32,000 bases of DNA from Wallemia ichthyophaga EXF-994 (Eukaryota > Fungi > Basidiomycota). The notes below the pieces were generated by a model. The model ran no database searches. It saw nothing but the letters and a program-made list of their open reading frames with translations, and was not told the DNA's origin. Location: positions 5,938-37,937 of the forward strand of contig NW_008806304.1 of NCBI RefSeq assembly GCF_000400465.1, written 5' to 3'. Below are positions 22,708-28,749 of this stretch, in pieces. Position numbers and translations under genes: made by a program. How positions within the stretch are numbered: position 1 is the stretch's first letter; the number at the start of each line of letters is the position of its first letter.

Positions 22708-24260
22708 TCAGTTAAACAGTATCTCATTTGATTTCTCTACTGTGCGCTCAGCACCGGGGGAAGCCCCCTGTGGACGAGGAAATGGCTCCAAGCCGAGCAA
22801 CTGGCGTGAAGGACCAGCCTCGACGTTTTCTGGGAGCATTCGACCAAAGAAGTGACTCTCGCCCTCGCCGCCCGGGAAGTCAGATGGCGGCAGACCCTTG
22901 ATGAATCTGCTCCTCTGATCGACGAGATAATGCGCGTTGTTGATGGTGAGTGGTATGGCTGGTATGTAGAGAACACTGGAGTCGCTCTGTCCGTGATGCT
23001 CCGGCTCCACGGCGTGCACTACGTCGCTGTGCCAGTACACCTGGTCGCCAGGTGAGAGACTTGGCGCAGACACCATCGTCTTATCGAGCTGCAAGTGCGG
23101 GTGCGTGTGACTGCTCAGCTCCTGCGTCCTACCCTGTGAGCCGCCTGGGAAGTGCGTGCTCTCCAGATCCAGCTTCCAATCGCTGAAGTCCAGATGCTGC
23201 GGGGTCCTGACAGGCGCAAAGAATGGCCGAAGAATGATATACGCTGTTGCTAGCTTGAGATCGACTGGCAGAACTTTGAGTGTACCCTCGCGTGGCCCGA
23301 CCTTGCTCAAACTCGTCCAGCCTTTGTTTTTGGCGCAAGGTTAGAGAATTACGGTCGAAAAGTTTACATCCCTCACTCACCCTGGAACGGTCTGTAGACT
23401 GAACAGCCTCCTGCTGCACCATACAAGTCAAATTGCGCATTCAAGCGAGGCGACACGTCGAATGGGTCATGCTCCTCCCAGTTGCCTTGGAGGATGTGCT
23501 TCCAGCATGCCCTGTATCCTGGATCCTCCCAGCGCTCCAGAGAACCACCATCGATATGAGGCCCCAGTGCAAATTGGGAATCGCCCGGCTTGCGAATTCT
23601 CAATCTGTCCAAGTAAGACATGACAGAACCAAGACTGATCTCAGATTGCGGATCGCTGGCATGGAGAAGGTTAAGGAGGAACTCCTGCGTCTGTCTCAAA
23701 GCAGGATGACATCTGGCCTCAGTCTGAGCCACAGAGTGGTACAACTCGAACACCTGGACATCATCTGCAGGGAACCCCCTCACTCTGTCCTTATTCGCAC
23801 GCGCATAGTCGCGGATAGACTGCTTCCAGCGGAGCGCCTCACCCTCAGGCACACCCCCATCGACTACCACCGAGCCGACTTTCTTGATGCGTTCTAGTAT
23901 ATCTACATCCATACCACTCTTTATCTGATGGAAAGGTAGGCGCGGGATAGCGTCTGAGCCGAGAGCTTCGACGTGCTCGACCTCCATCTTCAGTCTACTG
24001 AGAACGTCTCTCCATGATTCAATCAGACTGTCCTTCCACATATTCTTCTTGAGATGAGAAAATCGCTGTGGAAGCTCCACCGGCTTGTCACCCGAGAGCG
24101 ATGCAAAGACACTGGCGATAGAGCCCTCCTCTTTCTCTTTAGGCGGCGCTTTAGGAGGTGCTTTTGTGGCGAGGAGTCGCGAATATGACCCGACAGCCTT
24201 TTTTGTAGTTGTCTTTGTTGCCATGGCACTTGTGCGTTTTGTAATACTCAGATAAACCAT
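22708..24260 (-). CDS. DUF1479 (YbiU/Gig2-like) non-heme Fe oxygenase, probable mitochondrial presequence
   Basis: Motifs YLDRLRIRKPGD, LGPHIDGGSLERWED, FQG-WTSLS (intron 23322-23380), GDQVYWHSDVVHAVE, SVLYIPAIPLT..NA.YL..QR..F..G.PP.DF. TATA-like TATACATAAAAG lies about 55-65 bp upstream of ATG 24260. Confidence 0.9.
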
Positions 24261-24582: not shown

Positions 24583-26659
24583 CTAGACATTTCTACAAAC
24601 ATCCAAAACCTTATACCCGAAGTCAAACACAACATCTTGATAACTTACGTATATCTGCGCGGAGATCCTAGCCCATAAGGAGAATGCGTGATGATATACA
24701 GATACAGAGTACTTCTTACTCGACCAAGACGGATGCATAAGTTGGTGTTGGATCGACTTGGCCAAATCAGCCATATTAGTATGAGGATCCAGCTGTGAGA
24801 GATCTACCGGCAACTGTACGTTGACCATGTTCGAAGTGAGTTCGTAAGCGTCATTATCAAGTAGACAAGTGCCCCACAACTCAGCGAGTGCTTTACCAGA
24901 CTGGATAGCCAGACTGCTGCAATACTGATTGATGCGCGCCTCGCCTCCGATTTGCTCCCGATAATCTAATGCACAGTTTACACTGAGATAAGCGGTGAGA
25001 TCCATCGTACCGCTCCAAGAATGAATTGTTGCAAATGTGAATCCTCTGCCACTACCCGTCACATCTGGGGCGTTGTAAAATGGTCCTGTCGGCATACTCG
25101 ACTTGAACAGCTTCTGGTTTTCTTTGGAGACGTACATCACCCCACAACCACGCTGCGTGTATAGCCATTTGTGGCAGTTTGACACCCAGAAATCTGGCTG
25201 TGCTTCTTTGAGATCTACATCCTGATGGCCGATCTCCTGTGCTGCATCCACCAAACTGAGTACTTGGTTTTTTCTACACACATCCACTAGTCGCTGCCAA
25301 GGCAGCCTGCAGCCGGGTTTGGAGCTTATCGCATCTATCAGCGCCAGTTTGGGACTGGCTGAGCCCATCAGGGTTGTCTCAAAGCTTGCGATAATGTCGT
25401 CGTGTGTAGTTGGGAACGATAGAGGTATAATTGTCATTCGCAGGCCGGGGTTGTTGTCGAGAACAGATCGGCAGGCATTTACGCAGCTGTTCGGACGTTA
25501 GCGGTGTTTAAGGTACGTGAAGCATCTCACACCTTGGATAAGACGTACTAAACACAAAGATTTCATCTTCCGGGTTGAATTTTACGTTTGCCAGTACTTC
25601 ACTGACACCATGTGTGGCATTCTAGGTGTGTCAGAAGTCATCAAAGCGTGTCATTAAACCCACCGGTACAAACACCAGATCCTCATCGTCGCAATTCACC
25701 AGCTTAGACAATCTTCGCCGTGCTTGGTTGAGGGGTGCCTCGTACTCCGCCTCAACATACCACAAGTCCGGGTTAGCCTCCACTTTATCTTGTATCTTCC
25801 TGTAGGCTTGCATTACGGGTTTGGGGACAGCGCCAAAAGAACCTGTGGGTTGTGAGGGAGGTTGTACGCAAGACATCATAACAACAAACCGTGATTCAGA
25901 TTTACTGCGATCGGTCGTAAGCGAGTTCCATCCATGCTCATGAGACCCACCATAGTCATCGCTAAAGAAGAAGTCTTGCCTTCTGTCTCTCCCAAACTCT
26001 GACGCTCTGGGTTTTGGTGTCTGTGCACGCGAGCCTGATTCGCTGCTATCCAGCCTTTTATCATCTCGGAGGAAGGCAAAGTTCGTTGAATTGTTATCGG
26101 GGGTATTATCAGGGTTGTTATCGGGATTGTACGTAATATAGTCCAGCTTAACCCATTTGTGCAGTTTCTCTTTCACAAAAGCGTCAAAAGTCCACAGCGT
26201 TTTTTCCAGTCGCTCGCTCCCGTCTCTCCAGACGTAAACCTCGCAATCGACTTGATCGATGACATCTCCAGCCACCTTGGCGGTCGAAGGCTTCCAATCT
26301 TCTGAGCAAATCTCTTTTGGCGTTATCCTGTAGGCTTTCGTGGCCACTCTATCATACTCGTACCCTTCAAAGCGGTCAAATAGACTGATATGCTCATCTG
26401 TAAGCCCTTCGATAAGAGCTCCGCGTACTGTGGATTCTTCTTCCGTGAGACTTCTCTCGAGTATTGCTTCACTGTCTGTGGTGATTGCGGGATAGTCTTC
26501 TCCGATTACGTGGTGTCGCGTGTAGCCAAACAGCAGTGCATTCGATATCCTCAGCTGGGAGAGATTATCCTGATTGAGGACACTCTTGACTATCTGGGGC
26601 ACCATCAGTGTACCATAACACAATATCGTGCGATTCCCGCTTTTCGTATGCACGGCCAT
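24583..26659 (-). CDS. Fusion: N-terminal gamma-glutamylcyclotransferase (AIG2-like) domain plus class-V PLP C-S lyase (Egt2/cysteine desulfhydrase-like)
   Basis: GGCT motifs LCYGTLM, GYTRHHV..EDYPAI, VRGALI, LFDRFEGYEY. The linker has no stop and no Met. Lyase motifs FGRD...DDYVNLNHGSFGAVP (introns 25905-25950 and 25843-25889 flank a 15-nt exon), DLVFVPNATHGV (two more short introns at about 25622-25663 and 25487-25532), VDAAQEIGH, PLP lysine WVSNCHKW, WARISAQIY. Confidence 0.85.
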
Positions 26660-26766
26660 GATGACTTTATTAATCAACGGAAGTTGGCAAGACAAGCGCA
26701 TTGCACAGAAATATACAAAAAACAATGTGAATCACCTATAGATACATTTCCCAAGTTCATCGTGCA

Positions 26767-28749
<1,983 letters not shown>

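Follow-up and report, generated by a model that had tools for sequence, protein, structure and literature searches.

An AIG2-like domain fused to an Egt2-orthologous C–S lyase in Wallemia ichthyophaga: a putative two-step deglutamylation and C–S cleavage enzyme

The window analysed here, a 32,000-nucleotide stretch of contig NW_008806304.1 from the basidiomycete Wallemia ichthyophaga EXF-994, carries on its minus strand (26659 to 24583) a gene that joins an AIG2-like domain of the gamma-glutamylcyclotransferase (GGCT) fold to a pyridoxal phosphate (PLP)-dependent C–S lyase of the Egt2 type. GGCT-fold enzymes release gamma-glutamyl groups as 5-oxoproline (bioRxiv 10.1101/2025.01.15.633182), and Egt2 is the PLP-dependent enzyme that cleaves the C–S bond of hercynylcysteine sulfoxide in ergothioneine synthesis. 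We found that the lyase half is the orthologue of fungal Egt2, and that the pairing of the two halves is old and under selection in Basidiomycota, the halves forming one gene in early-branching lineages and two genes, often arranged head to head, in crown mushrooms. We hold this observed part of the account, namely a two-domain gene, Egt2 orthology, an AIG2-like fold and an old pairing, with high confidence. The fuller statement, that the protein is a two-domain Egt2-orthologue enzyme carrying out consecutive deglutamylation and C–S cleavage, includes a proposed mechanism, and we judge the chances of its being correct to be about even.

The interval 24583–26659 runs exactly from the start codon (ATG, 26659–26657) to the stop codon (TAG, 24585–24583). 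Removal of four GT–AG introns of 46, 47, 42 and 46 nt (range 42–47 nt) leaves a coding sequence of 1,896 nt in five exons, encoding 631 amino acids. The initial annotation of this stretch had described one continuous reading frame, and every motif it quoted is present (YGTL, FEG, NPDNNPDNTPDNN, VNLNHGSFG, DAAQ and SNCHKW), but continuity exists only after the introns are removed. In genomic DNA the frame of the ATG closes at a stop at 25631–25633, inside intron 3; VNLNH lies in a frame different from that of the ATG, on a 15-nt microexon; and DAAQ and SNCHKW lie in the third frame. The frame looks uninterrupted on the raw DNA because introns 1 and 2, which together measure 93 nt, contain no in-frame stop.

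Exon 1 encodes the AIG2/GGACT-fold domain (residues 1–172; 26144–26659), with the YGTL codons at 26606–26617 and the codon for the catalytic-type Glu98 of the FEG motif at 26366–26368. It continues through a low-complexity inter-domain linker (NPDNNPDNTPDNN; residues 173–218; 26006–26143) and ends with the first conserved lyase segment, FGRDRRQDFFFSDDY (25951–26005), which aligns with the N-terminal FG...F.F of Neurospora crassa Egt2 (NcEgt2) and of all homologues. Intron 1 (46 nt, GTGGGT...CAG; 25905–25950) is followed by the microexon, which encodes (Y)VNLNH(G) and occupies 25904–25890. This exon supplies part of NLNHGSFG, the most conserved N-terminal motif of Egt2 and the one that holds the equivalent of Phe48. 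Beyond intron 2 (47 nt, GTTTGT...CAG; 25843–25889), exon 3 (25664–25842) covers lyase residues ~242–301, and beyond intron 3 (42 nt, GTGGGT...TAG; 25622–25663), exon 4 (25533–25621) carries NATHG, which makes PLP phosphate contacts, and TSY, which contains Y329, the equivalent of Tyr134. Intron 4 (46 nt, GTGTGA...CAG; 25487–25532) leads into exon 5 (24583–25486), which encodes the bulk of the PLP lyase, including D411, Q414, SNCHK(437)W with the Lys437 codon at 25168–25170, T491 and R604.

The splice model is supported by the related species W. mellicola CBS 633.66, whose annotated protein (P0001, 625 aa) is 68% identical and collinear over the full length and across all four junctions, as seen in the segments ...YINLNHGSFG..., ...VFIQNATHG... 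and ...TTYPSCFNAC.... Aligned as DNA, the two loci have kept their exons (identity over the whole aligned stretch, 79%) and the introns have diverged, with GT..AG positions identical for all of them; the same microexon with the same flanking GT..AG is present in W. mellicola. The identity between the two proteins is 61% in the N-terminal domain, 39% in the linker and 72% in the lyase. The locus is also syntenic, with a DEAD helicase, polyubiquitin, the fusion gene, a Gig2-like/DUF1479 gene and BRO1/ALIX.

Methionine occurs in the spliced protein at residues 1, 19 and 252 and at later positions, with none between 19 and 252, and the lyase therefore lacks an in-frame start ahead of its conserved N-terminus. 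This bears out the earlier observations that the linker is free of both Met and stops, which is true of the spliced protein, and that the lyase has no start of its own. We considered a lyase-only isoform initiated from alternative-frame ATGs in intron 1 (MTMVGLMSMDG...VNLNH) and rejected it as a chance occurrence, because the corresponding frame in W. mellicola is closed 31 nt upstream of the microexon and is free of Met. At the other end of the gene, a second in-frame ATG lies 42 nt upstream of 26659, at 26701–26699 on the minus strand; the true start may be this one, which would add 14 residues (MRLSCQLPLINKVI).

The C-terminal part of the protein (residues 219–631) is an Egt2-type class-V PLP lyase in which the catalytic and PLP-binding residues are present. 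The Pfam family Aminotran_5 (PF00266) matches residues 247–556 with an E-value of 6.5e-30. The best relative of solved structure is NcEgt2 (5UTS), which aligns with residues 211–628 at E 1.5e-69 and 238 bits; cysteine desulfurases score no higher than 46 bits. The initial call of an Egt2-like lyase is thus borne out, and can be sharpened to an orthologue rather than an additional paralogue. We took the roles of individual Egt2 residues from the literature (PMC10805701) and mapped them onto the fusion protein by alignment. Conserved in the fusion are Lys247 (K437), Tyr134 (Y329), Asp221 (D411), Gln224 (Q414), Ser196 (S386), Thr307 (T491) and Arg438 (R604), together with Asn244, His246 and Phe48 (F244); Phe304 is replaced conservatively by another aromatic residue, W488. 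In NcEgt2, Tyr134, Asp221 and Gln224 have catalytic or PLP-stacking roles and Arg438 binds the carboxylate (PMC10805701). The Schiff-base lysine K437, in the sequence S-N-C-H-K-W, is conserved in every sequence that covers its column. Judged by these residues, the lyase active site looks intact.

The set of residues that contact the histidine-betaine moiety of the substrate or lie in helix alpha-3 of NcEgt2 (Phe48, His276, Phe304 and Arg75) is not fully kept in the Wallemia lyase. Arg75 is replaced by Glu272 (codon 25755–25757, exon 3), a change found only in the two Wallemia proteins, the other fused proteins having Arg or Lys. His276 is replaced by Pro466 (exon 5), again in both Wallemia proteins, at a position that is an invariant His in ascomycetes and variable in basidiomycetes. 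The Cys156 of the N. crassa mechanism is absent from the fusion lyase. At positions 224 and 48 Wallemia has the Gln and Phe of N. crassa, where His and Tyr are found in most other basidiomycetes; His also occupies position 224 in most ascomycetes. Together, the residues at positions 75, 276, 224 and 48 may point to an altered substrate in Wallemia.

The N-terminal domain is matched by the Pfam family GGACT/AIG2-like (PF06094) over residues 13–152, with 30.7 bits against a cutoff of 22.8, so that a Pfam scan recovers both halves of the proposed fusion. We modelled residues 1–180 with AlphaFold2 (AF2) from a 50-sequence alignment, and the model has a mean predicted local distance difference test score (pLDDT) of 90.6 and a predicted template modelling score (pTM) of 0.86. 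Foldseek places the Arabidopsis AIG2-like structures 2JQV and 2G0Q first, followed by human GGCT, yeast ChaC and human GGACT, with a probability of 1.00 for 2JQV, 2G0Q, 3CRY, 5HWI and 3JUC. The sequence profile of the domain matches only two solved structures, and these are again 2JQV (E 5e-20) and 2G0Q (E 7e-17). The earlier assignment to GGCT therefore stands for the fold, the YGTL loop and the glutamate, and needs correction as to the family, the nearest relatives being the plant AIG2-like clade and not GGCT proper.

In the AF2 model, YGTL (Y15-G16-T17-L18) follows directly after strand 1 and Glu98 forms the C-terminal end of helix 88–98, in agreement with the published active-site geometry of GGACT (bioRxiv 10.1101/2025.01.15.633182). 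The catalytic-type glutamate is thus kept, at the expected secondary-structure position, both in the alignments and in the model. Across 11 fused and 50 family sequences there is no variation at Y15, G16, L18, Y56-P57, D95, F97, E98, Y102, Y142 and W156. The domain is a member of the AIG2-like clade of the GGCT fold that keeps the YGTL loop and the catalytic-type Glu, and its active site, as far as alignment and model can tell, looks intact. It has in common with the plant AIG2-like proteins (At3g28950, 2JQV; At5g39720, 2G0Q; AIG2A/B) the motifs YG(S/T)L, Y-x-R...YP, D-x-x-EG-x-x-YER and YVW...W-F-E-E. The plant proteins stand alone and have been described as plant-specific (bioRxiv 10.1101/2025.01.15.633182), whereas the domain described here is fungal and joined to a C–S lyase. 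Compared with fungal Egt2, represented by 5UTS and Schizosaccharomyces pombe SPBC660.12c, the fusion is orthologous over its C-terminal 410 residues and adds the N-terminal AIG2-like domain (~172 aa) and the linker. For the arrangement of the two domains we used a full-length prediction of the W. mellicola orthologue P0001 (625 aa), which has a pLDDT of 90 overall and a pTM of 0.70. The segment equivalent to the linker falls below a pLDDT of 60, and the linker is accordingly predicted to be flexible or disordered.

The initial annotation had proposed a search for the same architecture in other basidiomycetes, and we found the fusion to be widespread and conserved in much of Basidiomycota. Proteins that combine PF06094 and PF00266 occur in Wallemiomycetes, Tremellomycetes, Cantharellales (Rhizoctonia solani, Ceratobasidium and Tulasnella), Auriculariales, Phallomycetidae (Sphaerobolus, Clathrus and Ramaria) and Pucciniomycotina (Mixia osmundae, Sporobolomyces blumeae and Atractiella). 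Among the top matches, ~30 species of Tremellomycetes each carry a single fused copy, with no further close copy; among them are ~10 Kwoniella species, Cryptococcus neoformans, C. amylolentus, C. floricola, Tremella mesenterica, Naganishia, Cutaneotrichosporon and Vanrija, the exceptions being Phaffia, in which the protein stands alone, and two unnamed fragments. The search for an additional stand-alone Egt2 likewise found no second close copy among the top matches in Wallemia. The architecture is already present in public protein databases under generic names, with one Tremellales entry labelled 'hercynylcysteine S-oxide lyase', and the window gene is one member of this existing uncharacterised family. 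Our literature searches on Egt2 together with gamma-glutamylcyclotransferase, AIG2 or GGACT, and on ergothioneine in Wallemia, Cryptococcus and Tremellomycetes, found no description of the fusion. The AIG2-like domain also has another partner: in Ustilaginomycotina, as seen in Pseudozyma flocculosa (P0336/P0379) and in a Logan sequence (P0326), it is fused C-terminal to a phospholipid/glycerol acyltransferase domain (PF01553) and not to Egt2.

A neighbour-joining tree of 120 lyase domains, built without bootstrap and therefore indicative only, tracks the species tree. Fused forms are paraphyletic at its base, and the stand-alone Egt2 proteins of crown Agaricomycetes and ascomycetes fall at their expected places. 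On this topology the fused gene is most simply read as the Egt2 orthologue of its lineage and not a side paralogue, and the fusion as an old one that later came apart several times.

Transcript-derived sequences of relatives cover both domains. The Logan contig L007 (1,983 nt) contains an uninterrupted two-domain open reading frame (ORF) of 644 aa, and contigs L008 and L009, from two runs, contain one of 621 aa. When L008 is compared with a related Clathrus genomic locus, the aligned blocks are parted by genome-only gaps of 50–61 nt; L008 thus lacks the Clathrus introns and represents spliced RNA. The transcript check proposed in the initial annotation is in this way answered for relatives, and not for Wallemia itself.

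The lineages in which the two halves are separate give a second line of evidence. Stand-alone N-domain proteins of ~200 aa occur in most crown Agaricomycetes, some ascomycetes and one chytrid. Of the five crown Agaricomycetes that we examined, three have the AIG2-like gene head to head with the Egt2 orthologue, as cross-checked by tblastn; the spacing is 177 bp in Pisolithus albus and 246 bp in Coniophora puteana, and the pair in Artomyces pyxidatus is likewise head to head. A metallophosphatase gene (PF00149) and then a metacaspase gene (PF00656) adjoin the pair in Artomyces, Pisolithus and Coniophora (L002, L004 and L013). A fusion in some lineages and a conserved divergent pair in others point to a shared pathway, and we regard this gene-order pattern as strong comparative evidence that the two halves act in one. 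At the loci examined in Sanghuangporus, Gloeophyllum, Cantharellus and Neofusicoccum, the AIG2-like gene is not adjacent to Egt2. Linkage in ascomycetes was accordingly rejected, the Neofusicoccum gene having no neighbouring Egt2, and so was linkage in Pucciniomycotina outside the fusion, the stand-alone Egt2 of Rhodotorula having no N-domain within 6 kb.

Some further features of these loci were noted. CTU2 lies farther upstream of the pair in Artomyces and Coniophora, in the latter with a P450 gene in between. In Rhizoctonia solani (P0241/P0376/P0378) the fused gene stands beside a BRCT (rad4-like) gene, and some gene models merge the two. In Cantharellus anzutake (L012) a stand-alone AIG2-like gene stands beside a BRCT gene with no lyase nearby, an arrangement that looks like local loss or relocation of the lyase half.

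We propose that both domains would act in sequence on one scaffold. The N-terminal domain would take the gamma-glutamyl group off a gamma-glutamyl-S-substituted cysteine, probably a sulfoxide, as 5-oxoproline, and the lyase domain would then split the unmasked cysteine conjugate, giving pyruvate, ammonia and either a thiol or a sulfenic acid. Our first candidate for the substrate is gamma-glutamyl-hercynylcysteine sulfoxide, in which case the N-terminal domain would be a non-homologous analogue of the mycobacterial enzyme EgtC and would serve either an ergothioneine route fed by gamma-Glu-Cys or the salvage of a by-product. Cysteine conjugates of other kinds, gamma-glutamyl or glutathione-derived, would be the alternatives. 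The specific form of the proposal, in which basidiomycetes such as Wallemia, C. neoformans, Rhizoctonia and Auricularia would use a gamma-glutamyl intermediate to make or salvage ergothioneine, with the AIG2-type domain doing the job of EgtC and releasing 5-oxoproline, seems to us rather unlikely. Fungi have been stated to lack a deglutamylating enzyme in the ergothioneine pathway and hence to use cysteine (PMC5066259).

The proposed order of reactions has known counterparts. In mycobacteria, EgtC deglutamylates gamma-glutamyl-hercynylcysteine sulfoxide before EgtE acts (PMC10805701), which is the same logic of gamma-glutamyl removal followed by a PLP C–S lyase. The glutamyl part is taken off there by EgtC acting, according to its description, as a glutamine amidotransferase (PMC10805701); enzymes of the GGCT fold instead form 5-oxoproline. 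The Pfam scan of the fusion protein found no amidotransferase family, and the N-terminal domain has the GGCT fold; it may work like EgtC but is not a member of the EgtC family. EgtC and EgtE are also separate proteins, and EgtE has less than 20% sequence similarity to Egt2. In gliotoxin synthesis, a cysteine conjugate that stems from glutathione is unmasked by GliK, a gamma-glutamyl cyclotransferase, upstream of C–S cleavage and dithiol formation (PMC6923255). The genes in that system, GliG, GliK, GliJ and GliI, are separate and clustered, and a dipeptidase step intervenes, unlike in the fusion; no glutathione S-transferase (GST) or dipeptidase is found among the neighbours in the window, which thus lacks a GliK/GliI-type cluster of nonribosomal peptide synthetase, GST and dipeptidase genes. 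GliI, moreover, is a lyase of the aminotransferase class I/II type and not of class V. In the lenthionine route of shiitake, the gamma-glutamyl group is first removed from a cysteine sulfoxide precursor, a step attributed to gamma-glutamyl transpeptidase (GGT) and not to a GGCT-fold enzyme. The deglutamylase and the lyase Lecsl of that route are not fused, unlike the two halves of the Wallemia gene. The Egt2-like shiitake protein Lecsl2 is described as the key C–S lyase in the formation of sulfur flavour, and it makes ergothioneine as well (PMC11677154).

Several points weigh against consecutive deglutamylation and C–S cleavage by the fusion protein. Members of the AIG2-like family are found apart from Egt2 in Sanghuangporus, Gloeophyllum, Cantharellus and Neofusicoccum, and in Pseudozyma the domain is joined to an acyltransferase; the role of the family may therefore be broader. 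GGACT, the characterised enzyme of PF06094, prefers gamma-glutamyl-amines. The molecular action of the AIG2-like clade has been published as unclear (bioRxiv 10.1101/2025.01.15.633182). With a disordered linker and a pTM of 0.70, nothing suggests substrate channelling, and with Arg75 changed to Glu and His276 to Pro, the substrate in Wallemia may not be hercynylcysteine sulfoxide at all. Finally, two Grifola frondosa genes, Egt1 and Egt2, are enough for ergothioneine production in yeast (PMC7437059), and Lentinula edodes Egt1 with Lecsl2 yields ergothioneine from free Cys in vitro (PMC11677154); since synthesis from free Cys suffices, deglutamylation is not obligatory in crown basidiomycetes.

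A different account, which we consider a real though less probable possibility, is that the lyase is the canonical Egt2 of the free-cysteine pathway and the AIG2-like domain does something chemically unrelated to the substrate of the lyase, working in general gamma-glutamyl-amine or glutathione/5-oxoproline turnover or in regulation, so that fusion or adjacency would reflect co-expression. The sufficiency of Egt1 and Egt2 in heterologous and in vitro systems (PMC7437059, PMC11677154), the many fungi in which the AIG2-like family is unlinked to Egt2, the acyltransferase fusion, and the flexible linker with no confident inter-domain geometry predicted are all in line with it. It sits less easily with a fusion kept across several basidiomycete classes and with the genes staying paired head to head, within 177–246 bp and in a conserved block, after fission, which is a classic signature of one pathway; the removal of gamma-glutamyl groups by the GGCT fold also suits a cysteine-conjugate lyase. 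That the N-terminal domain is a catalytically dead GGCT-fold module serving the structure, oligomerisation or localisation of the lyase appears improbable to us. There is precedent in the Paulinella crTP, where GGCT folds without the catalytic Glu were recruited for a non-enzymatic use (bioRxiv 10.1101/2025.01.15.633182), and AIG2-like proteins have no assigned activity. The residues that include the YGxL loop, the Glu, D95, F97, Y102 and Y56-P57 are, however, invariant in the 11 fused and 50 family sequences, and the invariance of the loop and the Glu argues for a conserved active site.

We also weighed whether the fusion is an artefact of the gene model, with a GGACT gene and an Egt2 gene adjacent on the same strand and transcribed separately. 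The genomic frame is indeed broken by the stop at 25631 and by frame changes, the RNA evidence comes from relatives and not from the organism of the window, and annotation pipelines do make chimeras at this locus: in a public model (P0002, 1,065 aa) the fusion gene is erroneously joined up with ubiquitin and with the Gig2-like/DUF1479 gene. Against this, the spliced sequence is free of Met from residue 19 to residue 252 and of stops from one domain to the other, the sole alternative-frame start is not conserved in W. mellicola, the intron positions are conserved, intron-free RNA-derived contigs of relatives encode both domains in one ORF, and dozens of independent annotations agree. We conclude that an artefact is very improbable and that the fused gene and its Egt2 orthology are almost certainly real.

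The surroundings of the fusion gene in the window are housekeeping genes, encoding polyubiquitin, DEAD helicases, ALIX/BRO1, Prp18, NSUN2, a proteasome ATPase, ALG3 and the Gig2-like/DUF1479 protein, and we therefore rejected the idea of a biosynthetic cluster around it. The polyubiquitin gene (26767–28227 and beyond, minus strand) comprises at least six head-to-tail ubiquitin repeats on the same strand as the fusion gene; it ends 107 nt upstream of the fusion-gene ATG, and the corresponding gap in W. mellicola, where the genes are arranged alike, measures 111 nt. Directly downstream, on the same strand and syntenic in W. mellicola, lies the Gig2-like/DUF1479 gene (PF07350; 22708–24293, minus strand), which is interrupted by an intron at ~23311–23372.

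In the textbook account, fungi make ergothioneine from free cysteine with two enzymes, Egt1 and Egt2, and no glutamyl-removing step is said to be involved. The joining or pairing of Egt2 with a gamma-glutamyl cyclotransferase-like enzyme in much of Basidiomycota suggests that a step, a substrate or a salvage reaction has gone unrecognised, which is of practical relevance to the engineering of ergothioneine production from basidiomycete genes. As a 'Rosetta stone', the fusion also gives a clue to what AIG2-like proteins, which matter in plant immunity, may do, and C. neoformans, an established genetic system, carries it. If ergothioneine were indeed made or salvaged through a gamma-glutamyl intermediate, this would overturn the statement that fungi lack a deglutamylating enzyme (PMC5066259) and would provide the first biochemical function for the AIG2-like clade. 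It would then bear directly on AIG2A/B, the plant immune regulators that genetics has linked to defence metabolites containing sulfur.

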